Source: Octopus sinensis (taxonomy: Eukaryota). Taken from it: a stretch of DNA of 64,000 nucleotides. Below the pieces are notes generated by a model. That model did not search any database, was not told the DNA's origin, and saw only the letters and a program-made list of their open reading frames with translations. The stretch is from assembly GCF_006345805.1 (NCBI RefSeq), contig NC_043011.1, positions 12,846,464-12,910,463 on the forward strand, read 5' to 3'. Positions 3,750 to 62,048 of this stretch are shown piece after piece (the stretch's first letter is position 1; every line of letters starts with the position of its first letter). A program made the translations under genes and the position numbers.

Positions 3750-4136
3750 GTGGAAGCACTCCGTCGGTTACGACGATGAGGGTTCCGGTTGATCCGAATC
3801 AACGGAACAGCCTGCTCGTGAAATTAACGTGTAAGTGGCTGAGCACTCCACAGACACGTGTACCCTTAACGTAGTTCTCGGGGATATTCAGCGTGACACA
3901 GAGAGTGACAAGGCCGGCCATTTGAAATACAGGTACAAGAGAAACAGGAAGTAAGAGTGAGAGAAAGTTGTGGTGAAAGAGTACAGCAGGGATCACCACC
4001 ATCCCCTGCCGGAGCCTCGTGGAACTTTTAGGTGTTTTCGCTCAATAAACACTCACAACGCCCGGTCTGGGAATCGAAGCCGCGATCCTATGACCGCGAG
4101 TCCGCTGCCCTAACCAGTGGGCCATTGCGCCTCCAC
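3750..4136 (-). mobile_element. tRNA-derived SINE family B, full copy
   Basis: tRNA-like head with A/B boxes (TGGCCCACTGG, GCTTCGATTCC on minus); 11-bp TSD tacttaagctt (3739-3749 / 4137-4147); three more near-identical copies in the window. Confidence 0.9.
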
Positions 4137-8440: not shown

Positions 8441-8830
8441 GTGGATGGAAGCACTCCGTCGGTTACGACGACGAGGGTTCCGGTTGATCCGATCAACGAA
8501 ACAGCCTGCTCGTGAAATTAACGTGTAAGTGGGTGAGCACTCCACAGACACGTGTACCCTTAACGTAGTTCTCGGGGATATTCAGTGTGACACAGAGAGT
8601 GACAAGGCCGGCCATTTGAAATACAGGTACAAGAGAAACAGGAAGTAAGAGTGAGAGAAAGTTGTGGTGAAAGAGTACAGCAGGGATCACCACCATCCCC
8701 TGCCGGAGCCTCGTGGAACTTTTAGGTGTTTTCGCTCAATAAACACTCACAACGCCCGGTCTGGGAATCGAAACCGCGATCCTATGACCGCGAGTCCGCT
8801 GCCCTAACCACTGGGCCATTGCGTCTCCAC
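8441..8830 (-). mobile_element. SINE family B, full copy
   Basis: Near-identical to 3750-4136; TSD tgaatgttttgt (8431-8442 / 8832-8843). Confidence 0.9.
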
Positions 8831-14047: not shown

Positions 14048-17000
14048 TCACACGGTTCCTTGCACGCACAACACTCGTGCAACATACTTCCATCTCTTTT
14101 GGAACGTACACTCTGACAGACACCTCTTCTCCAGCCACAGTTTCCTTTTCAAATGAAAAGAAAAAAAGGATCGTAAATTGTCACCAGAGATAAAGTTGCC
14201 TGTCTTAATTCCTTTTATCCTAGTCTTCCATACTGCCTCTTTTGCTATTGCTACAACCGTGAGAAAACAATTCTTACCTTCGTTCGTTAGAACTCCCGGT
14301 GGGTCAATTTTTATAATTGACTCAGTCGACAGCCGTACTCTTCCTTCGCCGGACAACAGATGTTCAGCATAAGCCCACATTTCAGTTATCTCCGGACACT
14401 GAACAATAGCGTGAGGGACGGTTTCCCTGTCCCCACCGCATCTTGGACAGGTCGGCGACTGGCGTTTACCATGTCTTGCGAGCTTATCCCAAACGGGCAA
14501 GACACCTCTGTAGCATTGCCAGGTTAAGGACTTTTGGAAGTTGCCCAACGTTCTCAACCCGAATGTACGATGAAACAAACTGTCCAGTTGAATAAATCCG
14601 AGACCTAGAATAGACCCCAGGCCATCGTCGCATTCAGACTCTACCAACCCACTATATAAAATCCGTGTGGAACCCCTACCGCTGGCGTTGCCCGAGCGCC
14701 GGAACAGCAAAAGGGCCTTACGGCACTCTTTATGCCACTCACTCGACCTCGGTCTACGAGAACACCAGGCTTCCTGTTCGCAAAAACTCTTGAACTCAGG
14801 GAACATTTGTCTGGCTAGCGGAGACCACACCCGTTCACTATCCAGGAGAATCCAGAGGTGCCTCAACCTCAACGCATGTCTGCGCATCATTAACCAAGGC
14901 ATCCCTAAACCTCCCTTTAAAGGCTTTTGACAGCAGACAGAGCGTTTCACAAGTGGCGACCTGCCCTTCCATAAAAAGCGAAAGAGCTGTCTCTCCAACC
15001 TGATCAACCACGAATCCGGACAGGGCACGACGGTCAGGCGGTAGGTAATGACCGATGCGATAAACACATTGGCCACCTCCGCCCTCCCTTTCAGGGATAG
15101 CCACCGCCAAGACCAGGTCTTGACTACTGCAGCCACCCTGCTCAATATCTCCGTCCAGTTCTTCTCTATCTGGAGGCCTGGTCCAAACCAGACTCCCAGC
15201 AACTTAACCGGTCCCTCCGTCCAGCGCCTAACAACACTGTCTGAAGGCATCGACTTGCCAACCCAGGTGCCGAACTGCAAGCCGACCGACTTTTCCCGGT
15301 TAATCTTTGCTCCTGCTACCTCCTCGTAAGCATCAATAGTCTTACCTACTTCACGTAGGCGTGCTACTGTGGTTACACTGATAGTGATATCATCCGCGAA
15401 AGCCGTAACAAACTCCTCTAGTCCTGGTTCTCTCGGGATGCCACTCAACCTTTGCAGTAATGGCTCGAGAGCCATCACATACAAAAGTGGTGAAAGCGGA
15501 CATCCTTGACGAACCGAGCGTCTGATGGAGAACGGCTTCGAAAGGAAACCGTTCACCCGAACTATCGAGTCAATGTTGTGGTACAAAGCGATAAACCACC
15601 TGAGGAAGCCAAGGCCCAAGCCAAACCGCGCAAGTACAGTCGCTAGGTATCGATGGTCAACCCTATCAAAAGCTTTAGACTGGTCCAAATGCACCAATGC
15701 CCCACCTTTGCCAGATTTATTACCAACCCTCTCTATGGTATAGCGAATAAGATGGAGGGTATCCTGAATGGTTCTACCTGGATGGCACATGTCTGTGCCT
15801 CCCGGACTATACCATTCGCGACACGCGCCAACCTTTTTGCTAGAACCTTGGCCAAAATCTTCACTTCTGCGTTTAACAGAGTGATGGGCCTGAAATTCTC
15901 TAGAACGTCCCCCTTGTCCGGGTCCTTTCTGACCAACGTCACTACTCACCGGCGCACAGATCTGGGGATAAACCCATTCTGTTTCCAGTTCGCGTACACG
16001 TCAGTCAGTAGTTGCCCGAACAAGTCTGGCATACATTTATACTGCTCGTACGGAAGACCATCAAATCCCGGTGACTTACCCGCTTTACAATCGGCCAAAG
16101 CCTCCATCACCTCCTCAGGTGTGACTGACCCTTCGCAAGACTCCGCATCCGACCCCGAGAGGCACGGCAGCCCGGTAAGAAAGTCCTCGAGGGCTCTCCC
16201 ACCACCAGGACCGCCGTCACCCCCGAACAGCTGGGCGAAGTACTCCCGAAAGACCTCACACATTTTCTCGGGTTCGTTTACCAAGACACCATTTTGATTC
16301 GTCAAAGACCGAATAGAGGAACTATTTCCTTGCCGAGCTTCCACCACTCGGGTCCATCCAGCGGCTTTGATTCCTTCACTTCCCATTGCACGTAACTTAG
16401 CTCTGGTAATACTTCCCATGTGGTGGGCTTCAAGATGCTGGTTTAACTCCAGTCTTTTCACCCTCGCTTGGTCTGTATTACCAGTCCTCCAGGCTTCTTC
16501 TAGTTCCTTAACTATACCATCTCCTATTTTACGTCCCTTCTTAGCTAAACTTATGCTAAACCTAATAGACTCATATTTGATGGCTCTTTTTAGGGCGTAC
16601 CACCATTTGTTATTAATGATGGTACCTGTTAATGCCCTCTGTATTAACATCTTGATCCGCTTTCTGTACTCCTCAATCGCCAAAAGGGACGTATTGAGTT
16701 TCCAGTAGTCAGATCCCTGTCTATGCAACTTATCTACCGTCAGTTTACAGGTAACCATCTTGTGGTCACTGTAGCTGACTAGAAAAAACTGTGGACACTC
16801 AACTATGGACTTATCTTTTTCTCTAATTAAAATCCTATCTAGATATGTTCTGGTAGACCCGTCACTATTTGACCACGTCCACTGTGGAGTGTTCGGGTGC
16901 TCCAACCTATATGGATCTGCTAGCTGAAATTGACTTAGCAGATCCCGAAAGCCTGGGTTACATTTTCTGTTCATGTTCGAGTTTGAGCCAATACAATCTG

Positions 17001-17448
17001 TGTGTGCTGCACATATTGTATTAGAGTCTCCTAACACTACTAGTGAATGCGACGTGGCTAAGAACTTTCCTAGGCCACGAAAATATTCAGTTTGCGGGCC
17101 AATAATGTTTGGTGCGTAAATAGCGACCAGCCTGATTGTCTTGCCACAACTGAATGTCAAGTCGAGAACGACCAGCCTGCCTTCTGGGTCAGAAAAAACC
17201 AACTTTTTCTCGGCTACCCGGTTTCTTTTTAGTAGGACCAACACCCCACCCCCACCTCCCGCCCGACTCGGAGAAACGTATTTCTCGTAGCCGTTCAGGA
17301 GGGGGAGCAGATCTCTTGGCCCCTTCACCCGGTTTTCCGTTGCAACAATTACATCCAAATTTCTCGACCTGATGTCATTTAGAAAGCGTCCTTGCTTCCA
17401 GCTTGACAACAGGCCATGAACATTTAAACAACCAATGTGAATAGCCAT
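14048..17448 (-). pseudogene. LINE ORF2: APE endonuclease, reverse transcriptase and CCHC domain (~1130 aa restored)
   Basis: LNVHGL, ATE, YLDRIL, SDH (APE); FRPITLLN, LDQSKAFDRVDH, VRQGCPLSP, FADD (RT); CPRC...H...C. Only two lesions: an in-frame TGA at 15946-15948 and a 1-nt deletion at ~15780 (ATC CCA GGT read as ATCCAGGT). Confidence 0.92.
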
Positions 17449-17459
17449 GACTTACCTGT

Positions 17460-18982
17460 TTAATCAGGATTGTCCGGTGGAGGGGGACCCTCCACCTTTT
17501 TTTGATCCAGGGTCGGAGGTGGACGGTCTTGGGAAATAGATTTGTCAAAATCCCGTCTCACCACCGACACAGAATTATCAGGTGGAGGGGGAATCTCCAC
17601 CTTTTCCTTTTCTCGCGGGATCGGGGCTGGTAATCCATGAAATATCGACTTGTTAAAATCTAATCTCAATGAAGATACAGTCTTTCTGTATTTATTTTGT
17701 AGAATTCTATAAGTCTTATTTGAGACTTCATATATGTCGTAATTGATAAATTCCTCTGAAAGGTTATCTATTTTTTTTACAGTCTTTATCAGTTGAATGT
17801 CTCTCATGAGCTCAGTATCTTTAGTGTATACGGCTATTATGCCTTTTTCTTCTTTTTCTCTTCTGGCAGTCTTTTTTGGTCGTTGTTCTGTAGTAGTCGC
17901 CGCTCTCGGCTGGGTTGCTGGTTGTATTTTTCTTTTGTTTGTTGTTTTTTTCTCATCTGTTTCTTCTTTATCTTCTTCCTCTTTGTCTTTTTTCTCCTCT
18001 TCCTCCTCTTCTTCATTTTCCTTGCAGTTCCTTCGAATGTGGCCTAACATAAAAAACATCGAGGTTTTCGGCTCTCAACAAACACCACGAGGTTCTCCTC
18101 CCCTACCTCAATTGTCTCGGGAATTGCTTGAATTATTTTAGGGTCCGCTTGAATGAGAAGATTAATTGTTTGACCATCCCAGCGTGGGTTTTCCGTAGCG
18201 GTAGCCTGGAGGAGAGTAATTTTTTCTACCTCTTTGATTAGGACTGCCGTCAACAACCACATAGGTTCGACCTCTGGCGGGACCCTTGTAATTTTTATTC
18301 TCGACGTCCTCATCCCCATATAATAGGGGATGAGCTCCACGTCGTTCGTTTTCAGCGTTTCAACTGAGTTCTTGTGTGCTATTTCTTTATTGGTGAACCT
18401 TACTTCCACTGTTCCGAATTTTTTTCCTCTTCTCAGATATACTACGTCGCCCCATATTGGCTTTAAGCACTTTTCTATTTTCTCTTCTGACATTCTTTCA
18501 ATTTTTCTTTTTTGTAGACAATATGTTTTGAAAATTATTGTATTTTGCTTTTCTTCTTGTAATAACTTTTGCGGAGGTTCAATTTTCACACCGTTGTCAG
18601 TTATTTTCATCATTTGGCTGTATTTCATAAAGTCGCTTTTATTCGTCGACAGTATCCGGGTTCCACCCCCAGCAGCCAACGCAAAACTTTTTTTTCCATC
18701 TTTTGGTTCTATCTGGATGCTAAGTACATCAATTATTCTCTTCGACACAATGCCTTTGTTCTCTGGCAAAGTCGGAAACTCTTCTGGTGAAAGTTCTGAC
18801 GAGCTCTCAGACACATCTCCAAAAATATCAAATATATTATCCTCTCTGCTATTCCTTCTTGTAGCGGGGGAAACCCCTATTTCCTTGTCTGTAGTTGGCT
18901 CCTCGCCGGACATGTATTTCCTCCTCTTAACAGGAGAAACAAGTATTTCTGCTCCAACGGTAGGCTCCATGCTAGACGACAT
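17460..18982 (-). pseudogene. LINE ORF1 (RRM-like region plus CCHC knuckle), one frameshift
   Basis: ATG at 18982. PRCFLC ends one frame and LGHIRRNC continues in another at ~18045, splitting a C-X2-C-X4-H-X4-C knuckle. The C-terminus is acidic/basic with two PPPPDN repeats. Confidence 0.82.
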
Positions 18983-19144
18983 TCTTCCCCCCAGAGGGGG
19001 AATGAACAACGCGTGCTACCACAAGCACTAAGTGTTTTCAATTGAAAACTCCAACAGTTAAGTTATTCAACAGTTTAACAAGAAACAACAGTTATTAACA
19101 ATATTAACACCAAGAAACAGCAATTCTTACCACGAACACATGTG

Positions 19145-23310: not shown

Positions 23311-23529
23311 TACTCTCTTTTACTCATTTACTTGTTTCAGTCATTTGACTGCGGCCATGCTGGAGCACCGCTTTTAGTCGAGCAAATCGGCCCCAGAACT
23401 TATTCTTTGTAAGCCCAGTACTTATTCTATCGGTCTCTTTTGCCGAACCGCTAAGTGACGGGGACGTAAACACACCAGCATCGGTTGTCAAGCAATGCTA
23501 GGGGGACAAACACAGACACACAAACGTAT

Positions 23530-23570
<41 letters not shown>

Positions 23571-23736
23571 TACGACGGTCTTCTTTCAATTTCCGTCTAC
23601 CAATTCCACTCACAAGGCATTGGTCGGCCCGAGGCTATAGCAGAAGACACTTGCCCAGGATGCCACGCAGTGGGACTGAACCCGGTACCATGTGGTTGGT
23701 AAGCAAGCTACTTACCACACAGCCACTCCTGCGCCT
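23311..23736 (-). mobile_element. SINE family C, full copy
   Basis: tRNA-like head, (AT)n centre, tail ...cagtcaaatgactgaaacaagtaaatgagtaaaagagag on minus. Confidence 0.88.
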
Positions 23737-26569: not shown

Positions 26570-27000
26570 AAATTGGTTATATGTTCATATTAAGACAGTT
26601 GATATTTTCAATAAATGTTGTCTCTTTTTTTAACCGTTGTTGTATAAAAGTTGTTCCATTGCATTGGTATATAGGGAATATTTTGAAGTTTGGTGGGAGA
26701 TTTCTCGCACATCTCATTTAGTGATATCTGTCTATATTTTGGGAAACTGATTTATTCTCTATGTAATTTTGTTCTCCACCTGAGCGACATACTTGTTTGT
26801 CCCATATAGTTGTGATCACATCCTGAACAAGTTATGATGTAGACTAAGTTTTCGGATGCACAAGTAAACTCAGTCTTAATTTTAAATCTTTGTCCTTGTT
26901 TAAACAAGGAATTCCGATCCTTTCAGTAGTATGAAACATATTCTACATTTAGGCCACCTACATTTTTTTAATTCCTGGTTCCGTTGTTGTTGAGTATAAT
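26570..27000 (-). pseudogene. Penelope-like element GIY-YIG endonuclease relic
   Basis: FTCASENLVYIITCSGCDHNYMGQTSMSLRWR..LHRE* and RLKKETTFIE on minus; stops present. Confidence 0.8.
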
Positions 27001-27235: not shown

Positions 27236-27534
27236 CTTTATATATATATATATATGTATATAACTTACTTTTCCATTTCCTTTTAGTTACTTCTCTTAGC
27301 TTGATTCAGACGGTAGGTAGAAACATACTATAGTATTAATATATAATTATGAAGAATGAATATATTTCTACAAGTTAATACAGCTAATAGCTATTTAAAT
27401 GCTACTTAAATTTATTTTAATTTGCGGCTCTAATTGAAAGTAAACAGCTAAAGCTGGTCTATATTCTTAGCAATATATTCATTTCCAATATACATCATAT
27501 CACGCAAGTATGAAAGTACGTACGCGCTTATGTG

Positions 27535-27836
27535 CTCATACATACACACATACATACATAAATACATACATACATGCATACATACAGACAGACAGACAGA
27601 TAGACATGCATACATACATACATACATACATACATACATACATACATACATACATACATAAAGAGAGACAGACAGACATGCATACATACATACATACATA
27701 CATACATACACATACATTCATACATACATACATTCATACATACATACAGACAGACAGGCAGACAGACATGCATACATACATACATACATATATACATACA
27801 TACATGCATACATACATACATACATACATACATACA

Positions 27837-27870
<34 letters not shown>

Positions 27871-28015
27871 CATATATGCATACATACATAGAGACAGACA
27901 GACATGCATACATACATACATACATACATACATACATACACATACATACATACATACATACATACATACATACATACATACACATACATACATACATACA
28001 TACATACATACACAT
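27535..28015. repeat. (TACA)n/(CAGA)n compound microsatellite
   Basis: Direct reading. Confidence 0.95.
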
Positions 28016-28570
28016 GTGTTACTGATTTTATAGGGATAGCGTGAAAGCTTTGGAACAAATAACTGAGACAGACAGACAGACAGACAGACAGACACAGGCA
28101 GGCAGGCAGGCAGGCAAACAGACACTCTACTTATTGCAATGCTTTGGAAATTTTTAATATCCACTTCACAGATACACATCTTGCTTATATAACTCGAGAT
28201 AAATTCCTCTCCATCTGCACCCCCCCCCCCCGTGCTTTTCACTCGAGCCCGAGGGGGAAGACTATGAAACCTGACCATCTTTTGCTTAATTGTTCTTAAT
28301 TGCATTTATCCTAGTCTGTTTCGTTTAATTTTTAAATGTGGGACAGAAGAGCAAGGCTTTCTTGCAGGTAGAAACGATCAGATAATAACTTGCTTGGCTA
28401 AGAAAAAAAAGCGAAAGGAGTCGAAGAATTAAATACTTCATTCGATTAACTCCCGAACTGACGACAGGAAGACAATCAAACGTTTGCGCCGACCTCGTTT
28501 GGAACAGATGTTGCCACTGGAAGCATTTCTAATTTCTCATATCTAAACTGATTTTATCCCATGCTTATCT

Positions 28571-28574
<4 letters not shown>

Positions 28575-28608
<34 letters not shown>

Positions 28609-29698
28609 GAGAAGAGAGAGGACGAGAGAGAGTGAGAGAGAGAGAGAGAAACGAGGAGAGTGAGGGGAGAGTGAGAGAAGAGAGAGTGAGAGAGAGAGAG
28701 TGAGGAGTGAGAGAGAGAGTGAGAGTGAGAGAGAGGAGAAAGAGAGGAGGAGTGAGAGAGAGAGAGTGAGAGAGGTGAGAGAGAAGCGTGAGAGTGAGAA
28801 GAGAGAGTGAGAGTGAGTGAGAGAGGAGAGAGAAAGAGAGTGAGAGTGGAGTGAGAGAGAGAGAGTGAGAGTGAGAGAGAGAGAGAGAGTGAGAGTGAGA
28901 GAGAGAGAGTGGAGAGAGAGAGTGAGGGAGCAGAGTGAGAGTAGAGAGTGAGAGGAGAGAGAGAGTGAGAGGAGAGGAGTGAGAGAGAGAGTGAGAGGAG
29001 AGAGAGAGTGAGAGTGAGAGTGAGAGTGAGAGAAGAGAGTGAAGAGAGAGAGAGAGAGAGAGAGAGATGAGAGAGAGAGAGAGTGAGAGAGCGAGAGAGA
29101 GATTGAGGAGAGAGAGAGAGAGAGATGAGAGAGTGAGAGGAGAGTGAGAGAGGAGTGAGAGTGAGAGAGAGAGTGAGAGAGAGAGTGAGAGAGAGAGAAG
29201 AGAGTTTGAGACGAGAGAGGAGAGAGAGATTGGAGATTGAGAGAGAGAGTGAGAGAGTGAGAGAGAGAGTGAGAGAGAGAGTGAGAGTGAGAGAGAGAGT
29301 GAGAGTGAGAGTGAGAGTGAGAGAGAGAGTGAGAGAGAGAGAGAGAGGGTGAGAGAGAGAGTGAGAGAGAGAGAGAGAGATTGAGAGAGAGAGGTAAAAC
29401 TAGTAGAAGTATGTTTTTGTTTATGCTTATCTGTATGAACATATCTCTAGTCTTAGTTAGTGCGTGCATGCGTGCGTGCGTGTGTGTGCGAGTGCATGTG
29501 TGCATGTATCTGTGTACGTGCGTCTGTGTGTGTGTGTGTATCGTGTATCTGTGTATGTGCGTGTGTGTGTATGTGCGTGTGAGCATGTGCGTGTGTGTGT
29601 GTGTATCTGTGTATGTGCGTGTGTGTGTGTGTGTGCGTGTGTGTATCTGTGTACGTGCGTCTGTGTGTGTGTATCTGTGTGTATGTGTGCGTGTGTGT
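28575..29698. repeat. Long (GA)n/(GAGT) tract followed by a degenerate (GT)n tract
   Basis: Direct reading; source of the 390-aa SL/HT pseudo-ORF. Confidence 0.95.
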
Positions 29699-30137
29699 AA
29701 AAAAAATGGAATCACTTTCAGGCATCAAAGATGTTGCATAAACAGTAAACTTGTGTATTGTTTCGACGAAGAAAGGTAATAGTAGTCACGCGGAATCCCG
29801 AGAGTCAAATGAAATAGCACAATTGTTGGAAACAAATTCATATCTTCATTGTTTCGATAACTAATATTGAAAGAAGTAACGCTTTAAACAGCTGTTCTTG
29901 TCTTTATTGTCTTTATCTTTTGCATTCATTTCAATAAATTTTTATTTTCTACAATGAAAATGGTTCACATCCCTAGCAGAACGGAAACAAACAGCAACAG
30001 CGATGATGAGACATTTGAATGAGCATGCGCATTTAGACAAAGAGAAACACAGGGAAGATAATTAACTTCACAGTAAATATAACCAGTGCCTTTCGAATAT
30101 CAAAATTACTCCAGGCCAACAATGGAATGGTCTATGA

Positions 30138-33164: not shown

Positions 33165-33586
33165 TTTTCTTCTTTCATTTGTTTCAGTCATTTGACTGCG
33201 GCCATGCTGGAGCACCGCATTTAGCCGAACAAATCGACCCCAGGACTTATTCTTTGTAAGCCTAGTCCATATTCTATCGGTTTCTTTTGCTGAACCGGTA
33301 AGTTACGGGGACATAAACATACCAGCATCGGTTGTCAAGCGATGGCGTGAAGGGAACAAATACAGACACACAAACAAACACACACACACACACGTATATG
33401 TAGATACGACGAGCTTCTTTCAGTTTCCGTCTACCAAATCCACTCACAAGTCTTTGGTCGGCCCGAGGCTATAGCAAAAGACACTTACACAAGATGCCAC
33501 ACAGTGGGGCTGAACCGAGAACCATGTGGCTGGTAAGAAAGCTACTTGCAACACAGCCACACCTGCGCCTAGCCACTCCTGCGCCT
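33165..33586 (-). mobile_element. SINE family C, full copy with a duplicated 5' end
   Basis: Matches 23311-23736; agccacacctgcgcct agccactcctgcgcct tandem at the head. Confidence 0.85.
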
Positions 33587-38727: not shown

Positions 38728-41018
38728 TAGTTGCCAACTTAAAATCACAATTTTATGCTAAATTTCAGTAGAAAAATAACGCTAAAAAATGCTAAATATG
38801 ACACAAAAAAAATGCTGAAGACTAACTATATCAAAAAGCTTAATTTTTATCTTTCTTTAATTATATTCAGCATTGAGAAATGATTTCTTGAATTTCACTG
38901 ATTTGATCATTTTCAGCTGTGGTGCCTAGGTCTTGACTCCTGTTCCAATCAATTCAAGGTTCCAATCTTGTTAATTATGTGTTGTGGAATATCGAAGTTT
39001 TTACATTTGCAAAATCTTTTCAGGCCATATTTTATAGACAGTATTGATCTAAGCATGGGAAGATGCATTTTGTTTTTCAATTTTGATTTGATTACACCCA
39101 CACTACTGAACAACCGTTCAATTTCTGCATTTGATTTTGGCAATGTCAATAAATTAATGGCAAAATTTGCAACATCTCCAAAAGGATTTCCTCCAGTGGC
39201 ACCTTTATATTCCAAGACTTCTAGCCAGAATGCTTCAGTACTAGATGCATTTGTCCATATAAATAAATGAATGCTTTTAAACTGAATTTCAATTGAAGCA
39301 ATTTTTTCTTCATTTAAATGCATTGCTTCTAAGACAGGTAAAATTAGCTCTTTGAAATGCTGCAAAATATTCTCTACTGAAAAACATTTGATGTTCCTCA
39401 GTATATTAATATTTTCTGGCAAACGGTACTTGAGCTCTTTATGAAGGCAGAGTAAAAATTGTTGTGCTCTTTCATGAATATTATTTTCTTCGGTGGCTGT
39501 TGCAGTCTTCTTGATAATCATTTCTGCTATCTTTCTCTCGAACCTATAGCCTAAATTTGGTTTAGGATCCAGAAATTTTTCAATAGAAGCATCAGGATCA
39601 ATTCTACATGTTGGCAATTCTACATGTTGGCAACACTATCATATTAGCAACAGATTTGATCAAATTTGAAATTTGCTTTGTCGAAAGTGTTTGATTCAAA
39701 CAGTTTATTCACTTCCTGAACATGTTTTAAAATTGGATGCACAAATAAAAGGTAAAGTTCATTCCTAGAATCACAAAACATTTCACGTAACGTTTGTGCT
39801 GTAAAGCATTTTTCTTTTGTAATTATAGTTTGGAAGAGAGTTTGTAATTCAAACCATTGGCTTAAAATTCTATTTACAGCTGGTTCTATTGACGGCCACC
39901 TAGTTGTACAAGACTTCAAAATCTTCAAAGGCTCTTTATCATTGATAGTAAAGTTGTTTGTAGGCACGTTGTCTTGTTGAAGAACGAGAGAACCATTTAT
40001 AGGTTTCGGATAGTAAAAATACTAAATTTATGGGCGGGCATTCAACACAAGTGTGGGATACTGCCAACTCTAAAGAATGGCATAGACATCTAAATAAAAG
40101 TAATGATGGAATTTCTTTTAATTTCTGGAAAACACCATTGTTGAGTTATATCATTACCCTAGCATTGTCGGTTCCCATAGCCAGTAAATTTTTTATATCT
40201 AATTTCTTTTTCGCTAATTCAATTTTTAAGGCATCTACAGTGCCATCTGCATTGCATGTTTCTAAAGATAGCATACTGAGATATGTATGTACCACGTTTT
40301 CGTGGGTGTCACTGTAATATATGATAACAATTCCTAACAACTTGTTTATCGATATATCATTGAATTCATCTAATAACAGGCTAAATTTTCTATCTCCTAT
40401 ATCAGAAATCGAATCTCCATCAAAATATGGAGGTAGAAACATTCCTCACAATATTTGCACATTTTGTACGATACAACTTCACTTTGGACATTATATCACT
40501 AACATATAATTCTTACATAACTCTATTAAGTGATCACAGCTATTAAATGATGAGTAGCAACAAATAAACATTGCTAAATTTGCTTCAAGCATAGATGATT
40601 TATCATTTTTGGTTTTAATAAGATTGGTTAGAGGAATCATTTGCTGTGGAGTTGATGCCTTATGTTTCTTTGCTTCACAGTGGCTTACTAAAAGAGAATA
40701 TTTTGCCAACATACTACATCTACAATATCTGCAATGTGCTTTAGATTGGTCACTAGGTACTTCAAGCAACCACTTAGTAAGCGCTGGCATCTTAAGCCAT
40801 TCCTTTCGGAAGTTTTGCTGGTACAACTTTGTTTTTTCTTTGCTCATTATAATGTAGTGGAAGCAAGAAAATAAATTGAATGATTAATAAAGATATAAAA
40901 TTGAAAACACAACTTAGCTTGCCGCTAACAATTCTTTCCATTCGCCGCTAACAATTCTTATGTTTGCTGCTTACAAATTCTTGAGGTGAAAAATATTGAT
41001 TCAGGGTGCATGGCAACC
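38728..41018 (-). mobile_element. Decayed hAT-type transposon
   Basis: Transposase relic flanked by short gttgcca / tggcaac inverted cores and subterminal gccgctaacaattctt repeats (40918-40983). Ends are uncertain. Confidence 0.55.
38949..40847 (-). pseudogene. hAT transposase pseudogene (BED-like finger, DDE core, dimerisation domain)
   Basis: KAHCRYC..H..KKH, FSLLLDE, GTDNA, CLCHSLELAVS, TRW, FWLEV...LLTLPKSNAEIERLFS; several frameshifts and stops. Confidence 0.88.
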
Positions 41019-44624: not shown

Positions 44625-45010
44625 GTGGAGGCGCAATGGCCCAGTGGTTAGGGCAGCGGACTCGCGGTCATAGGATTGCGGCCCCGATTCCCAAACCGGG
44701 CGTTGTGAGTGTTTATTGAGCGAAAACACCTAAAGCTCCACGAGGCTCCGGCAGGGGATGGTGGTGATCCCTGCTGTACTCTTTCACCACAACTTTCTCT
44801 CACTCTTTCTTCTTGTTTCTGTTGTACCTGTATTTCAAAGGGCCGGCCTTGTCACTCTCTGTGTCACGCTGAATATCCCCGAGAACTACGTTATGGGTAT
44901 ACGTGTCTGTGGAGTGCTCAGCCACTTACACGTTAATTTCACGAGCAGGCTGTTCCGTTGATTCGGATCAACCGGAACCCTCGTCGTCGTAACCGACGGA
45001 GTGCTTCCAC
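44625..45010 (+). mobile_element. SINE family B, full copy
   Basis: GTGGAGGCGC...GTGCTTCCAC; (ac)tgtaatat repeated on both flanks. Confidence 0.9.
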
Positions 45011-45847
45011 TGTAATATATTGAAGTTTCAAATCAGAGTAATTCCTCTCGATGTTCTTTGCTGACCCACAGCAAAGAATTATTACTCATGATGACACAGC
45101 CTTGCTCTCCATATGCGTCACAAGGGCTAGCACTAACTTTTTAAAATATCTTTTAAAGGCTTACAAAATCTGTATTAATTCTTGAGCGTCTTGAAAAATG
45201 TGGTATTCCTAATTTTATTACACTCAAGTATGATGAGTAAAACAAGCAGTAGTATCTAAAAGAGAAAAAAAATCTTCCTGAAATTGTTAATTTTAAACAA
45301 TCTTTTCCATGCGAAGACCGCCGCCAGTAATATTCGACTTTCCTTGCGAAGTGCATCATAATGTTTTGTTTGATTTCCAGTGTATCACGAAGTCAAGATG
45401 GGGGAATGACTGTAATAATTTCATTTAGCAGAGCAGCACGCGGCATACATAAGTCAATGGTACACGTGAAATACACACGACGAACCAGTGTGTGTGTGTG
45501 TGTTCTCCCGCATACTATTACAGAGATTACAGCACGACTGAGGGTGCGACTGAACTAGACTGCAGCTCCTTGAGAAATCTTGAGGATTCCAGTGCGGAAA
45601 TTGGTATTTAGTTAAAAAGCGTTATATCATAATTCATACTGTTTTGGCTAGATTAATCTTCCTTCATGCTGCTTTTTAATGATGTTAAGGTTAAATCAAT
45701 ATGAATTCCAATGTTATTATCAGTCTGAATGTGCTTGATGCACGTTCGGATTGGGGAACAAGCTTTTTGCCACGAAGAATATATTTCGCTTGTCTGACAA
45801 ATGGTATGTATACATCTAGATCAGCTCGCAGCGCCATATACCCAGAT

Positions 45848-45893
45848 TGTGAGATGCTAGCATTTCGGAGTAATTATCTCCTCATCAGTCACA
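45848..45893 (-). ncRNA. Minimal type I hammerhead ribozyme with an intact core
   Basis: UGUGA-CUGAUGA-GGAG(AUAAUUA)CUCC-GAAA-UGCUAGCA-UC|UCACA; palindromic stem III AUGCUAGCAU; AUC cleavage between 45853 and 45852. Confidence 0.85.
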
Positions 45894-46467
45894 GACACTA
45901 GACAGACGAAACTACGAGCTGAATTAAGAGTGTCGTCTGCCTAGTGTCTGTGACAATTTCACTTACCACTGCTTAGAGCTCCCCCTAAGTAAATTAATAT
46001 AAATTAATATAAAGCTATAATATTATATAATAAATTGTGTTGGATACAAAAATAACTTTTTCCTGATATGTATGTTTATAAAAGGGGTAATAGAGATGTT
46101 AAAATGGAAAAGAGGGGAATTTAAAAAAAGTTAAGAACAACGCTGCCCACACTTTTGACATTTATATTTTTGTACCACAAAAGAAGCAAAGCTATACATA
46201 CGTACGTACGGACATACATATATGTGCATGGAAGTACATGTGTATATGTATGCATGTATGCATGTATGCATGCATGTATGTATGTATGTATGTATGTATG
46301 TATGAATGTATGTATGTATACGTGTATGAATGTATGTCATTATTCAGTGTATTTCAAGATTTCTTGCCAACATAGAAAGAACCGGTTTCTAACCTAGATC
46401 CAAGGCACATATATGTATGTGTACATGTATGTATATATGTGCGTACGTGCATACATACATACATACA

Positions 46468-50512: not shown

Positions 50513-50898
50513 GTGGAGGCGCAATGGCCCAGTGGTTAGGGCAGCGGACTCGCGGTCATAGGATCGCGGTTTCGATTCCCAGACCGGGCGTTGTGAGTGT
50601 TTATTGAGCGAAAACACCTAAAGCTCCACGAAGCTCCGGCAGGGGATGGTGGTGATCCCTGCTGTACTCTTTCACCACAACTTTCTCTCACTCTTACTTC
50701 CTGTTTCTGTTGTACCTGTATTTCAAAGGGCCGGCCTTGTCACTCTCTGTGTCACGCTGAATATCCCCGAGAACTACGTTAAGGGTACACGTGTCTGTGG
50801 AGTGCTCAGCCACTTACACGTTAATTTCACGAGCAGGCTGTTCCGTTGATTCGGATCAACCGGAACCCTCGTCGTCGTAACCGACGGAGTGCTTCCAC
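50513..50898 (+). mobile_element. SINE family B, full copy
   Basis: TSD tattgccag (50504-50512 / 50902-50910). Confidence 0.9.
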
Positions 50899-56097: not shown

Positions 56098-56144
<47 letters not shown>

Positions 56145-56398
56145 CGGTGTGTGTATACTTATATATACATGTATGTATATATGTACGTATATATACATGT
56201 ATGTATGTATATACATACACATATACATACACACATGTATATATACGATTGAGTATGCATCTATATGTATGTATATATACATGCACATGCATATATATGT
56301 GTTTGTATATATACATACATATACATGCATATATATACATATATATGTGTATATGTATATTTATGTATATGTATATCTATCTATCTATATATATATAC

Positions 56399-56434
<36 letters not shown>

Positions 56435-56657
56435 TCAATATAGGGAGGCAAAAAAATTTTGTAGAATTCTTTTGCCCCCAGCGGCCTAGTGGGAAAAAAT
56501 TAAATAGTCATAAACCATTTTTAAGTTCAATATCACAATCAAGGAACGGCCATAATAGGCCATTCACCCACTAGAAATAACAGCCAAAAAGCTTCAACAA
56601 CCGCAAAATACATTAATTCCGTAAATCAGGAGAAAATTAAAAAACATTTACCCTGAA

Positions 56658-56764
56658 ATTCCTTAGACGATGCACCGTTTCTTCTACTGTTTAATGGTAA
56701 ATTAACCTGATTAAATTAAATCAAGCCAATCTACCATAGGCCCTTAGATTCATCAGTAAGGAAT
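56658..56764 (-). ncRNA. Type I hammerhead ribozyme L1
   Basis: Reverse complement of the R1 motif; GUC at 56668-56666. Confidence 0.88.
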
Positions 56765-57148
56765 AGCCAAATCGGAACAGATATTTTTCACGAGGCATTC
56801 TCGTCCATGCCTCGCCAATATCTGACCTAAAATTTTCAAATCGTCGCACTCGCGCCAAATTTATCGGCAGCAAATAAATATAAGCCGCCGATTCCATTAC
56901 GGAACCAACCAGAAAATTCATAATTAATCAATATAGGGAGGCAAAACAATTTTGTAGAATTCTTTTGCCCCCAGCGGCCTAGTGGGAAAAAATTAAATAG
57001 TCATAAACCATTTTTAAGTTCAATATCACAATCAAGGAACGGCCATAATAGGCCATTCACCCACTAGAAATAACAGCCAAAAAGCTTCAACCGCAAAATA
57101 ACATTAATTCCGTAAATCAGGAGAAAATTAAAAAACATTTACCCTGAA

Positions 57149-57255
57149 ATTCCTTAGACGATGCACCGTTTCTTCTACTGTTTAATGGTAAATTAACCTG
57201 ATTAAATTAAATCAAGCCAATCTACCATAGGCCCTTAGATTCATCAGTAAGGAAT
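57149..57255 (-). ncRNA. Type I hammerhead ribozyme L2
   Basis: Identical to L1; GUC ends at 57157. Confidence 0.88.
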
Positions 57256-57637
57256 AGCCAAATCGGAACAGATATTTTTCACGAGGCATTCTCGTCCATG
57301 CCTCGCCAATATCTGACCTAAAATTTTCAAATCGTCGCACTCGCGCCAAATTTATCGGCAGCAAATAAATATAAGCCGCCGATTCCATTACGGAACCAAC
57401 CAGAAAATTCATAATTAATCAATATAGGGAGGCAAAAAAATTTTGTAGAATTCTTTTGCCCCCAGCGGCTAGTGGGAAAAAATTAAATAGTCATAAACCA
57501 TTTTTAAGTTCAATATCACAATCAAGGAACGGCCATAATAGGCCATTCACCCCTAGAAATAACAGCCAAAAAGCTTCAACCGCAAAATAACATTAATTCC
57601 GTAAATCAGGAGAAAATTAAAAAACATTTACCCTGAA

Positions 57638-57747
57638 ATTCCTTAGACGATGCACCGTTTCTTCTTCTACTGTTTAATGGTAAATTAACCTGATTAAATT
57701 AAATCAAGCCAATCTACCATAGGCCCTTAGATTCATCAGTAAGGAAT
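57638..57747 (-). ncRNA. Type I hammerhead ribozyme L3 with a 3-nt GAA duplication before GAAA
   Basis: cttcttctac at 57661; GUC ends at 57646. Confidence 0.75.
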
Positions 57748-58126
57748 AGCCAAATCGGAACAGATATTTTTCACGAGGCATTCTCGTCCATGCCTCGCCA
57801 ATATCTGACCTAAAATTTTCAAATCGTCGCACTCGCGCCAAATTTATCGGCAGCAAATAAATATAAGCCGCCGATTCCATTACGGAACCAACCAGAAAAT
57901 TCATAATTAATCAATATAGGGAGGCAAAAGAATTCTACAAAATTTTTTTGCCTCCCTATATTGATTAATTATGAATTTTCTGGTTGGTTCCGTAATGGAA
58001 TCGGCGGCTTATATTTATTTGCTGCCGATAAATTTGGCGCGAGTGCGACGATTTGAAAATTTTAGGTCAGATATTGGCGAGGCATGGACGAGAATCCTCG
58101 TGAAAAATATCTGTTCCGATTTGGCT

Positions 58127-58233
58127 ATTCCTTACTGATGAATCTAAGGGCCTATGGTAGATTGGCTTGATTTAATTTAATCAGGTTAATTTACCATTAA
58201 ACAGTAGAAGAAACGGTGCATCGTCTAAGGAAT
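58127..58233 (+). ncRNA. Type I hammerhead ribozyme R1
   Basis: Stem I AUUCCUUA(58127-34)/UAAGGAAU(58226-33); CUGAUGA 58135-41; stem II UCUA/UAGA, an internal loop and a 19-bp helix; GAAA 58210-13; stem III ACGG-UGCA-UCGU; GUC| at 58225. Confidence 0.9.
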
Positions 58234-58617
58234 TTCAGGGTAAATGTTTTTTAATTTTCTCCTGATTTACGGAATTAATGTTATTTTGCGGTTGAAGCTT
58301 TTTGGCTGTTATTTCTAGTGGGTGAATGGCCTATTATGGCCGTTCCTTGATTGTGATATTGAACTTAAAAATGGTTTATGACTATTTAATTTTTTCCCAC
58401 TAGGCCGCTGGGGGCAAAAGAATTCTACAAAATTTTTTTGCCTCCCTATATTGATTAATTATGAATTTTCTGGTTGGTTCCGTAATGGAATCGGCGGCTT
58501 ATATTTATTTGCTGCCGATAAATTTGGCGCGAGTGCGACGATTTGAAAATTTTAGGTCAGATATTGGCGAGGCATGGACGAGAATGCCTCGTGAAAAATA
58601 TCTGTTCCGATTTGGCT

Positions 58618-58724
58618 ATTCCTTACTGATGAATCTAAGGGCCTATGGTAGATTGGCTTGATTTAATTTAATCAGGTTAATTTACCATTAAACAGTAGAA
58701 GAAACGGTGCATCGTCTAAGGAAT
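58618..58724 (+). ncRNA. Type I hammerhead ribozyme R2
   Basis: Identical to R1; GUC| at 58716. Confidence 0.9.
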
Positions 58725-59106
58725 TTCAGGGTAAATGTTTTTTAATTTTCTCCTGATTTACGGAATTAATGTTATTTTGCGGTTGAAGCTTTTTGGCTGT
58801 TATTTCTAGTGGGTGAATGGCCTATTATGGCCGTTCCTTGATTGTGATATTGAACTTAAAAATGGTTTATGACTATTTAATTTTTTCCCACTAGCCGCTG
58901 GGGGCATAAGAATTCTACAAAATTTTTTTGCCTCCCTATATTGATTAATTATGAATTTTCTGGTTGGTTCCGTAATGGATCGGCGGCTTATATTTATTTG
59001 CTGCCGATAAATTTGGCGCGAGTGCGACGATTTGAAAATTTTAGGTCAGATATTGGCGAGGCATGGACGAGAATGCCTCGTGAAAAATATCTGTTCCGAT
59101 TTGGCT

Positions 59107-59213
59107 ATTCCTTACTGATGAATCTAAGGGCCTATGGTAGATTGGCTTGATTTAATTTAATCAGGTTAATTTACCATTAAACAGTAGAAGAAACGGTGCA
59201 TCGTCTAAGGAAT
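59107..59213 (+). ncRNA. Type I hammerhead ribozyme R3
   Basis: Identical to R1; GUC| at 59205. Confidence 0.9.
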
Positions 59214-59371
59214 TTCAGGGTAAATGTTTTTTAATTTTCTCCTGATTTACGGAATTAATGTTATTTTGCGGTTGAAGCTTTTTGGCTGTTATTTCTAGTG
59301 GGTGAATGGCCTATTATGGCCGTTCCTTGATTGTGATATATATATATATATATATCAACAATCAAGGAACG

Positions 59372-59420
<49 letters not shown>

Positions 59421-59446
59421 ATATAATATATATATACTATATATTT

Positions 59447-59804
59447 TTACTTGTTTCAATCATTTTACTGTGGCCATGCTGGAGCACCGCCTTTAGTCGA
59501 GCAAATCGACTCCTAGGACTTATTCTTTGTAAGCTTAGTACTTATTATATCGGTCTCTTTTGCCGAACCGCTAAGTTACGGGGACGTAAACACACCAGCA
59601 TCGGTTGTCAAGCGATGTTGGAGGGACAAACACAGACACATAAACACACACGCACACACATATATACATACATATACATATATACGACGGGCTTCTTTCA
59701 GTTTCCGTCAACCAAATTCACTCACAAGGTTTTGGTCGGTCCGAGGCTATAGTAGAAGACTGAACCTGGAACCATGTGTTTGGTAAGCATACACTCCTTC
59801 GCCT

Positions 59805-61717: not shown

Positions 61718-61800
<83 letters not shown>

Positions 61801-62048
61801 GTGTGTGTGTGTGTGTGCATATGTTTGTGTGTTTGTGTTTGCCCCTCCCCCCCAACATTGCTTGACAACCGATGCTGGTGTGTTTACGTCTCCGTAACTT
61901 AGCAGTTCGGCAAAAGAGACCGATAGAATAAGTACTGGGCTTACAAAAGAATAAGTCCCGGGGTAGAGTTGCTCGATTAAAGGTGGTGCTCCAGCAAGGC
62001 CGCAGTCAAATGACTGAAACAAGTAAAAGAGTAAAGAGTAAAGAGTAA
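61555..62048 (+). mobile_element. SINE family C, full copy
   Basis: aggcgcaggagtggctgtgtggtaag head, (AT)n/(GT)n centre, (AAAGAGT)n tail. Confidence 0.9.

Follow-up and report, generated by a model that had tools for sequence, protein, structure and literature searches.

A probable non-LTR retrozyme in Octopus sinensis: two head-to-head arrays of a ~490-bp unit that carries a type I hammerhead motif

The region 56427-59339 of the window (the whole 64-kb stretch of Octopus sinensis DNA that was analysed) is occupied by two blocks of tandem repeats, which are reverse complements of each other and are joined head-to-head at about position 57937 (Table 1). Tandem Repeats Finder resolved the first block, 56427-57952, into 3.1 copies with a period of 491 (98% matches), and the second block, 57923-59339, into 2.9 copies with a period of 489 (99% matches). 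The 489-491-bp units of the two arrays are at least 96.8% identical. Each arm comprises two full units plus partial units, and the monomers between the predicted cuts measure 491 and 489 nt in both arms, the same lengths that had been proposed originally. The original prediction had described the locus as a tandem repeat of about 491 bp with a hammerhead in each unit. This description holds for the repeat and for its hammerheads, but the locus is not one simple array; the head-to-head arrangement of two arrays had been left unsaid in the title of that prediction, although it was implied by the cuts placed on both strands. The near-identity of the units was borne out by the unit alignment, which contains about 10 private changes among the units over 2.9 kb. 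This small number of changes argues that the array is young. A BLASTN search of the 64-kb window with the monomer found no further copies outside the array.

The innermost pair of inverted arms lies at 57780-57934 and 57941-58095, separated by a spacer of 6 nt. At this centre, the arms begin at monomer positions of about 185-209, from where they run outward, and the strand switch occurs inside a common GGCAAAA. The two arms are unequal in length (1511 nt on the left and 1402 nt on the right).

Table 1. Positions of the features discussed in the text; coordinates refer to the window.
Feature	Position	Strand	Description
Decayed PLE-type GIY-YIG endonuclease fragment	26755..26922	-	...NLVYIITCSGCDHNYMGQTSMSLRWRTKLHRE; 30 kb from the array
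(TA)13	56404..56429	.	abuts left array end; terminus of a ~330-bp TA-rich microsatellite, 56098-56429
Left arm	56427..57937	-	~3.1 units, hammerhead on minus strand; 5'-truncated end central; outer 3' end at monomer position 237, adjoining (TA)n at 56427
Hammerhead domain	56658..56764	-	predicted cut after C56666
Hammerhead domain	57149..57255	-	predicted cut after C57157
Hammerhead domain	57638..57747	-	extra GAA in helix II 3' strand, giving 3 bp at stem II base; predicted cut after C57646
Head-to-head junction	57920..57955	.	within an imperfect hairpin of the unit, GGGGGCAAAAGAAUUC...UUUUGCCUCCC; symmetry centre ~57937
Right arm	57938..59339	+	~2.9 units, hammerhead on plus strand; 5'-truncated end central; outer 3' end at monomer position 134, adjoining (TA)n at 59339
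Hammerhead domain R0/R1	58127..58233	+	107 nt: stem I 8 bp, CUGAUGA, 68-nt helix II, GAAA, stem III ACGG(UGCA)UCGU; predicted cut after C58225
Reference cut-to-cut monomer	58226..58716	+	491 nt, 36.7% GC; predicted circular RNA
Hammerhead domain	58618..58724	+	predicted cut after C58716
Hammerhead domain	59107..59213	+	predicted cut after C59205
Right flank	59337..59417	.	(TA)9, then 26-nt inverted unit fragment at 59352-59377 (reverse complement of monomer 110-134), then (TA)21

The hammerhead motif, AUUCCUUA-CUGAUGA-...-GAAACGGUGCAUCGUC-UAAGGAAU, is present in all six copies, and CUGAUGA, GAAA and GUC do not vary among them. The core is complete in each copy (C3-A9, G12-A14, the A15.1-U16.1 pair and C17); none of the 13 core nucleotides is altered, nor is the GUC site. 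Helices I, II and III are arranged around this core in type I order, with helix I open. Thus, the complete core with three helices that had been reported for this locus is indeed present, and the C17 of each copy coincides exactly with the cut predicted earlier, three on either strand. Helix I has 8 bp; helix II consists of UCUA/UAGA followed by a 19-bp hairpin, and thereby carries a 68-nt insertion; helix III, ACGG(UGCA)UCGU, has 4 bp, one of which is a G.U pair. The sequences of helices I-III are identical in the six copies; the extra GAA ascribed to one copy was recovered in the copy whose predicted cut is at 57646. At the base of helix II, positions 10.1/11.1 form an A.A mismatch instead of a Watson-Crick closing pair, and a loop-loop tertiary contact is not identifiable in the hammerhead. 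Catalytic activity is uncertain because of this mismatch, the 68-nt insertion and the lack of an identifiable loop-loop contact.

The probability that such a motif arises by chance was assessed with structural descriptors. A relaxed type I descriptor (stem I of at least 5 bp; stem II of at least 3 bp, in which one base mismatch and an insert of at most 110 nt were tolerated; stem III of at least 3 bp) has 0.0033 expected matches per dinucleotide-shuffled window, and a descriptor at the observed stringency had 0 matches in 300 shuffles. The check with Rfam RF00163 (Hammerhead_1) that had been suggested earlier came out negative. The Rfam hammerhead models (RF00163 and the rest of clan CL00010) gave no match at the gathering score in the whole window, and none at E<=10 in either 56300-59500 (3.2 kb) or 58115-58245 (131 nt). 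The Rfam output for the locus was confined to generic miRNA-hairpin models far below the gathering score, which were triggered by the palindrome and the TA repeats. The 68-nt insertion in helix II is the likely cause of the Rfam miss, and covariance-model annotation can overlook such elements altogether where helix II is expanded. At 45.9 kb in the same window, there is also a compact hammerhead motif, for which Rfam reported 22.3 bits, compared with a gathering score of 48.5. Exact-pattern scans of viral, metagenome and prokaryote-genome collections yielded 0 matches; a looser second pattern for the metagenomes yielded 18, none of which had helices I or III, and these were discarded as chance matches.

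The predicted folds differ strongly between one and two hammerhead domains. For a lone domain, the cleavage-competent fraction is 0.16% of the predicted ensemble, and the pairing probability of helix III is about 0.01. The cofold of two domains is a double hammerhead of -82.7 kcal/mol, compared with 2 x -35.7 kcal/mol for the separate domains, and the unconstrained MFE structure of a 631-nt natural transcript (58110-58740) is likewise a double hammerhead, in which both C17 residues and both cores are unpaired. The models therefore indicate that the motif would work only as a double hammerhead, that is, as an obligate dimer. A short helix III, a palindromic loop and dimer action are hallmarks of metazoan type I and PLE (Penelope-like element) hammerheads (PMC4209133, PMC7229834). 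The base pairs of the stem II base have probabilities of 0.84-0.94, and the alternative AAUCUA/UAGAUU hairpin, which had been feared to remove this base, is not dominant. The 491-nt circle of the hammerhead strand has an MFE of -156 kcal/mol, compared with -112.4 +/- 5.3 kcal/mol for shuffled sequences (z -8.2), and 59% of its bases are paired. The asymmetry between the two strands (-156 versus -108 kcal/mol) was considered as a signal of selection and rejected, as it mostly reflects base composition (shuffle means -112 versus -73 kcal/mol).

The unit itself is non-coding. Its longest ORFs comprise 66-69 aa, and both an exact look-up and a homology search with the 66-aa ORF were empty. The ORFs of the flanks have no Pfam match, and no reverse transcriptase or endonuclease ORF was found in or beside the array. 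The search of the unit for Pol III A and B boxes, TATA boxes and poly(A) signals revealed nothing convincing, and tRNA-like parts were not found. On the hammerhead strand, each unit has four T stretches (T5 or longer), an argument against transcription of multimers by Pol III. The array consists of units alone, without LTR. Thus, the characterization of the unit as non-coding, AT-rich and about 490 bp long stands, with a GC content of 36.7% and a hammerhead-strand circle that folds far better than shuffled sequences.

These features correspond to those of metazoan non-LTR retrozymes, a class established in animals since 2020 and defined by a type I hammerhead in each short head-to-tail repeat of 150-450 bp, a non-coding sequence and a GC content below 45-50% (PMC7229834). 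The unit fits this definition in its hammerhead, its low GC content and its non-coding character, and its length of 489-491 bp falls within the range of 51-972 bp surveyed in a 2026 preprint. We conclude that the array, in the cephalopod O. sinensis, is probably a genomic copy of a metazoan non-LTR retrozyme, a retroelement that is non-coding and non-autonomous. Each part of the original proposal of a young, non-coding retrozyme-class element that can be checked in silico is supported.

The comparison with described systems revealed shared as well as divergent features. As in the metazoan non-LTR retrozyme families of Mytilus galloprovincialis (350-390 bp) and Acropora millepora (220-240 bp), every head-to-tail unit has a type I hammerhead, GC content is low, ORFs and LTRs are missing, the predicted circular RNA is highly self-paired and PLEs are present in the genome; these retrozymes also lack PBS and PPT (Cervera & de la Pena 2020, PMC7229834). 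In contrast, the unit of 489-491 bp is longer than those of invertebrate retrozymes (about 170-400 nt), and helix II is a 68-nt extended hairpin with A.A at 10.1/11.1, compared with about 4 bp plus a loop in metazoan retrozymes. With newt satellite 2 and the axolotl retrozymes HHR_Amex1 and HHR_Amex2, the octopus hammerhead shares a weak helix III, a palindromic tetraloop and a double hammerhead on multimers (predicted here). It differs from them in having 4 bp rather than 1-2 bp in helix III, an 8-bp helix I with no recognisable internal loop for a loop 1 / loop 2 contact, and a mollusc host. HHR_Amex2 also has a mismatch at the helix II base, U.U in place of A.A, and is active in spite of it (PMC7229834). 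Similarities to PLE hammerheads include the type I order, a larger-than-usual helix II, one additional, unpaired nucleotide directly following A9, a palindrome in helix III and loop 3, a predicted dimeric mode, and an association with tandem or inverted insertions (Cervera & de la Pena 2014, PMC4209133). However, PLE min-HHRs have a helix II of 6-8 bp, a helix I of 2-5 bp and a conserved G10.1-C11.1 pair (PMC4209133), whereas here helix II is far longer, helix I has 8 bp and A.A replaces the conserved pair; furthermore, no RT/EN ORF is attached.

The same divergent features could mean that the array is a local satellite or segmental tandem duplication with a decayed relic hammerhead, which no longer cleaves itself, produces circles or transposes. 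The A.A at the helix II base, the 68-nt insertion and the lack of Rfam matches are in line with such decay, as are the single locus in the window and the 3-nt insertion already present in helix II of one copy. Nevertheless, we regard this explanation as unlikely: none of the six copies has lost any of the 13 core nucleotides or the GUC site, the unconstrained fold of the natural two-copy transcript is a perfect double hammerhead, the units are about 99.6% identical, which leaves little time for decay, and Amex2 illustrates that a hammerhead can tolerate a mismatch at the base of helix II.

The ends and the centre of the array contain a possible record of its integration. Perfect (TA)n tracts of at least six repeats make up 1.4% of the window, yet they are present at both array ends, where the 3' ends of the arms meet them via AT microhomology. 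In both arms, an inverted 5'-truncated copy adjoins the 5' end of a head-to-tail multimer, and a 26-nt inverted unit fragment, a candidate for a PLE-type tail, is found at the right end only. PLE insertions have been described in which a 5'-truncated copy lies next to the element in inverted orientation, one end carries a tail of 30-40 bp, and a bias toward (TA)n is seen (PMC8557442). Judged by this analogy, the truncated head-to-head arms, the abutment on (TA)n and the candidate tail look like signatures of PLE integration (Craig et al. 2021, PMC8557442); the inverted 5'-truncated copy at the 5' end, the head-to-tail multimers and the insertion into (TA)n are common to both, and the 26-nt fragment would correspond to the short one-ended tail. 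The published features stem from autonomous PLEs and their non-autonomous derivatives, not from retrozymes; the candidate tail is 26 nt long and inverted here, compared with 30-40 bp there; and a preference for (TA)n has been documented in the Naiad clade, which includes cephalopods among its hosts and lacks canonical hammerheads (PMC8557442). Tentatively, the locus might preserve a nearly unaltered integration product, in which two 5'-truncated multimeric cDNAs were joined head-to-head at the unit hairpin, their 3' ends were primed by AT microhomology in (TA)n, and a short tail was left at one end.

The palindrome would be uninformative about integration if the retrozyme units were real and their inverted arrangement were due to misassembly of a fold-back chimeric read or to a subsequent inverted duplication at the DNA level. 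Complex tandem and inverted structures are hard to assemble according to the literature (PMC8557442), most differences between the units are single-base indels, as in long-read errors, and the junction lies in a hairpin able to promote template switching during replication. However, the arms differ in length and also in the monomer position at which they stop (237 versus 134), the variants of one arm are not a mirror image of those in the other, and the junction, a 7-nt microhomology, is placed in a hairpin that is native to the unit and not at some arbitrary point. We therefore consider an artefact or later duplication to be quite unlikely.

The window also contains a remnant of a PLE. The GIY-YIG relic that had been noticed at 26570-27000 is real and of PLE type: an exhaustive HMMER search retrieved 476 homologues at E<=1e-3 (best 3.7e-15), and homologues combine RVT_1 with a C-terminal GIY-YIG domain, the PLE architecture; a word-index protein search with the relic returned no candidates. 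The relic has neither a sequence relationship nor a physical linkage to the retrozyme unit, from which it is 30 kb away, and searches around it, around the second hammerhead and in the flanks of the array found neither a PLE ORF nor a hammerhead. A PLE relic and a hammerhead array thus co-occur in one genome, and the relic attests only to the past presence of PLEs in this genome. Type I hammerheads are found in the pseudo-LTRs of PLEs, which form both tandem and inverted structures (PMC4209133, PMC8557442), and the 2026 preprint derives retrozymes from pseudo-LTRs. Nevertheless, it is very improbable that the array represents the pseudo-LTR of an autonomous PLE and not a separate non-autonomous element: RT and endonuclease ORFs are missing from the array and its neighbourhood, the flanking ORFs lack Pfam matches, and six units without a coding body fit a retrozyme multimer.

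Read-through transcription of the 1.4-1.5-kb inverted repeat would yield a near-perfect long double-stranded RNA, and the strongest Rfam matches of the region are the generic miRNA-hairpin models. The locus could accordingly be imagined to be mainly a hairpin-RNA locus, a source of siRNAs or piRNAs directed against the retrozyme family, with a secondary role for the ribozyme. We judge this to be highly unlikely, since the palindrome alone explains these matches, all of which are far below the gathering score, and such a function, a possible consequence of the structure, would leave the hammerhead unexplained. Finally, a chance hammerhead-like match in an ordinary repeat, with which the lack of Rfam matches would agree, has a negligible probability in view of the counts in shuffled windows, the unconstrained dimer fold and a context that fits the retrozyme definition.

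The analysis shows how the sequence is built, how improbable it is by chance and how it is predicted to fold. From the published systems cited above, we infer by analogy a life cycle in which the RNA is cleaved, circularised and reverse-transcribed, and likewise which enzyme mobilises the element. In multimers of the hammerhead strand, two adjacent copies would fold as a double hammerhead, with a 12-bp intermolecular helix III and with helix I in trans. The released monomers could be circularised by a host RtcB-type ligase. In the circle, the lone hammerhead would be disfavoured, and the circle would therefore be stable. A reverse transcriptase, most likely PLE-derived, may copy the circle over several rounds, and the multimeric cDNA would enter a (TA)n microsatellite, giving rise to two 5'-truncated multimers head-to-head with their 3' ends outward. 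According to a 2020 review, the question of the integrating machinery is not answerable from sequence motifs (PMC7761336), and the 2026 preprint approached the mobilising question by phylogeny only, on vertebrate (Xenopus) data. If other copies share the pattern described here, they would constitute evidence, at the level of the insertion footprint, that the RT/GIY-YIG machinery of PLEs integrates animal retrozymes.

The production of abundant small circular RNAs from animal genomes by retrozymes, via a self-cleaving ribozyme, has been recognised only recently, and the enzyme that mobilises these elements is still uncertain. The class itself is known; in the literature, we found no described cephalopod retrozyme family, and the sole cephalopod mention that we found is the 235 Rfam Hammerhead_1 matches in the giant squid genome. 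The locus would thus add a cephalopod family to the retrozymes. Its hammerhead, as modelled, would be structurally unusual in that it acts only as a dimer, has a 68-nt helix II and lacks the canonical pair at 10.1/11.1; it supplies a concrete double-hammerhead design. The insertion footprint points toward Penelope-like elements as the mobilising machinery, and the locus would extend the known picture of animal retrozymes rather than change it.

The locus at 56427–59339 consists of tandem arrays paired head-to-head and not of a single tandem array, as follows from the reverse-complement arms and from the layout of the units in BLASTN. Tandem Repeats Finder delineated a first array at 56427–57952 (period 491, 3.1 copies, 98% matches) and an adjoining second array at 57923–59339 (period 489, 2.9 copies, 99% matches). 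The two arrays are mutual reverse complements, with the innermost arms (57780–57934 and 57941–58095) separated by a gap of 6 nt according to the repeat finder. The tandem repeat of about 491 bp in the original prediction is present with such a period, in two arrays. In a BLASTN search with one cut-to-cut monomer, all units were 96.8–100% identical to it, and no copy was found outside the array in the 64-kb window. An alignment of the eight array pieces revealed about 10 differences across 2.9 kb, which were private to single units, except for one single-base deletion common to two units; none was mirrored between the left and the right arm.

The motif AUUCCUUA-CUGAUGA-(68 nt)-GAAA-CGGUGCAUCG-UC-UAAGGAAU is present six times in the array, with predicted monomers of 491 nt and 489 nt in each arm. 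The string positions reproduced exactly the six motifs, the cut sites on both strands, and the copy with an extra GAA (at 57646) that had been reported previously. A relaxed type I descriptor (stem I of at least 5 bp, stem III of at least 3 bp, stem II of at least 3 bp with one base mismatch allowed and up to 110 nt inserted) matched the six array copies and one further site in the window. A chance match of the array motif is excluded by the expectation of 0.0033 matches per dinucleotide-shuffled window and by 0 matches in 300 shuffles at the observed stringency.

Features of the window, with positions of the predicted cut-site residue C17 for the array hammerhead
Feature	Position	Strand	Evidence or remark
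Array hammerhead, C17	58225, 58716, 59205	+	motif string
Array hammerhead, C17	57646, 57157, 56666	-	motif string
Compact type I hammerhead	45853-45893 (context 45840-45965)	-	strict descriptor
GIY-YIG relic frame	26755-26922	-	Pfam and HMMER; contains ...NLVYIITCSGCDHNYMGQTSMSLRWRTKLHRE
LINE-type retrotransposon	14048-19009	-	Exo_endo_phos (AP endonuclease), RVT_1, zf-RVT
SINE-like interspersed repeat, ~315 bp	59445-59760	+	directly right of the (TA)n of the array
SINE-like repeat, also	23327-23648, 33173-33482, 61779-62028, others		
Interspersed repeat, ~210 bp	44800-45010, 50688-50898, 3750-3960 (-), 8446-8654 (-)		four copies, 95-98% identity
ORF with hAT C-terminal dimerisation domain match	38949-39617	-	E 8e-4, weak, below cut-off

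The Rfam search proposed for Hammerhead_1 came out negative: no hammerhead was found in the array at the gathering score, nor at E ≤ 10 on 3.2 kb or on 131 nt. This silence is probably due to three departures from the canonical form. Positions 10.1/11.1 are A.A, in contrast to the usual G-C; helix II is enlarged, with UCUA/UAGA followed by internal loops and then by a G.U-rich hairpin of 19 bp; and no contact between loops 1 and 2 is recognisable. Such departures have precedents: in the axolotl hammerhead HHR_Amex2, which is active, helix II starts with a U.U mismatch (PMC7229834), and in the hammerheads of Penelope-like elements (PLEs) helix II is enlarged and the nucleotide after A9 is unpaired (PMC4209133).

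For one 107-nt domain folded alone, helices I and II are predicted to form, and the alternative hairpin that had been feared as a refutation does not win because stem II base pairs have probabilities of 0.84–0.94. The probability of helix III is only about 0.01, and the hammerhead-competent fraction is 0.16% of the ensemble. Helix III (ACGGUGCAUCGU) has a self-complementary sequence, and cofolding of two domains gives a double hammerhead (−82.7 kcal/mol vs. 2 × −35.7 kcal/mol as separate monomers). The natural 631-nt transcript 58110–58740, which spans a pair of adjacent domains together with the full spacer, was folded without constraints, and its minimum-energy fold is exactly the double-hammerhead dimer: a 12-bp helix III pairs 58213–58224 with 58704–58715, helix I is formed in trans, and both C17 residues and both cores are unpaired. 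In these predicted folds, the array hammerhead would share the behaviour of newt, axolotl, and PLE hammerheads, of which multimers are active and the monomeric circle is silent (PMC4209133; PMC7229834). We infer that it self-cleaves, with two adjacent copies on a multimeric transcript pairing as a dimer that would then be cleaved.

The 491-nt monomer has a GC content of 36.7%. The circular fold of the hammerhead strand has −156 kcal/mol, compared with −112.4 ± 5.3 for shuffles (z −8.2), and that of the opposite strand −108.1 (z −6.2); the gap between the strands is mostly compositional. The longest ORF has 66–69 aa and no homologue was found for it; the unit contains neither tRNA-like parts nor Pol III boxes, and there are four T5+ runs per unit on the hammerhead strand. 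These features agree with the published profile of non-LTR retrozymes in metazoans: short, GC-poor tandem repeats that bear a type I hammerhead, lack LTR, PBS, and PPT, and have a highly self-paired circular RNA (PMC7229834). The unit size also falls inside the 51–972 bp range of a 2026 survey (bioRxiv 10.64898/2026.07.22.740005).

In hammerhead-strand monomer coordinates, both arms start centrally at about 185–209, within an imperfect hairpin of the unit itself, and extend outward; the switch between them sits in a GGCAAAA common to both. The left arm ends at position 237, abutting (TA)13, and the right arm at 134, abutting (TA)9, with unit sequence ending in TAT at both outer junctions. On the right, (TA)9 is followed by a 26-nt inverted unit fragment (59352–59377, the reverse complement of monomer 110–134), a candidate PLE-type tail, and then by (TA)21. 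Perfect (TA)n of at least six repeats make up only 1.4% of the window. This architecture fits the published description of PLE insertions, which have an adjoining inverted and 5'-truncated copy, a 30–40-bp tail at one end, and a strong microsatellite bias, for (TA)n in Naiads, elements that lack canonical hammerheads and are reported in Octopus and other cephalopods (Craig et al., PMC8557442). It suggests that PLE-type machinery inserted the array as a multimeric cDNA. A palindrome would likewise result from template switching at the hairpin at a later time or from an assembly error; a trivial fold-back artefact is at odds with the unequal arm lengths and the unmirrored variants.

The predicted GIY-YIG relic is real, judging from its homologues. 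An exhaustive HMMER search retrieved 476 at E ≤ 1e-3 (best 3.7e-15, 59–60% identity), and long ones (P0205, P0151) carry a GIY-YIG domain at the C-terminus, after RVT_1, the canonical PLE architecture; the Pfam GIY-YIG match itself (E 0.026) was under the cut-off. The relic is decayed and 30 kb from the array, with no reverse-transcriptase remains upstream, no hammerhead nearby, and no sequence common to it and the array unit in BLASTN. It shows only that PLEs were once present in the genome. Directly upstream, at the expected site of the reverse-transcriptase domain, lie long minus-strand low-complexity tracts (27450–28060 and 28540–29720), one a (CATA/TGTA)-type repeat with MYVC... pseudo-ORFs, the other CT/CA-rich (GC skew +0.52) with SLSLSL... 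pseudo-ORFs.

The compact hammerhead at 45.9 kb, UGUGA-CUGAUGA-GGAG(AUAAUUA)CUCC-GAAA-UG(CUAG)CA-UC|UCACA, is unrelated to the array motif and has a canonical G10.1-C11.1 pair; its helix III (AUGCUAGCAU) is a perfect palindrome. Its strict descriptor had 0 matches in 300 shuffles, and a below-threshold match to Rfam Hammerhead_3 (22.3 bits, E 0.0038) was seen only in a 71-nt search. There is no second copy in the window, no PLE ORF is nearby, and the motif probably represents a solitary member of a different retrozyme or PLE pseudo-LTR family. Ahead of it lies a 22-bp hairpin that ties up the 3' strand of the hammerhead's helix I.

Among the other elements, the LINE has its domains split across ORFs of 321, 199, 500, and 633 aa and a GC content of 45–50%, above its surroundings. 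Its reverse transcriptase has its best named relatives in Argonauta hians (55%) and in Acanthosepion pharaonis (32%), in line with a cephalopod host. A reverse transcriptase 59% identical to that of the LINE in a metagenome record (L002; JGI 3300045642, Ga0486131_03187) indicates that some such records hold host animal DNA, probably from a cephalopod or another mollusc. The SINE-like repeat has at least four other window copies (85–88% identical), and ARAGORN found no tRNA in the copy at 59445–59760. The hAT-like ORF is probably a decayed transposase fragment.

Scanning viral, metagenome, and prokaryote collections for the pattern yielded nothing or chance matches only. No account of a cephalopod retrozyme emerged from full-text literature searches; the sole cephalopod mention was of 235 Rfam Hammerhead_1 matches in the giant squid genome. 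The array probably belongs to the already established retrozyme class, demonstrated experimentally in a coral, a mussel, and the axolotl (PMC7229834), whose connection with PLEs, suggested in 2020, received phylogenetic support in 2026, mainly from vertebrate data (bioRxiv 10.64898/2026.07.22.740005). What is distinctive about it is the expanded helix II, the A.A at 10.1/11.1, the invisibility to Rfam, and the clean head-to-head footprint in (TA)n.
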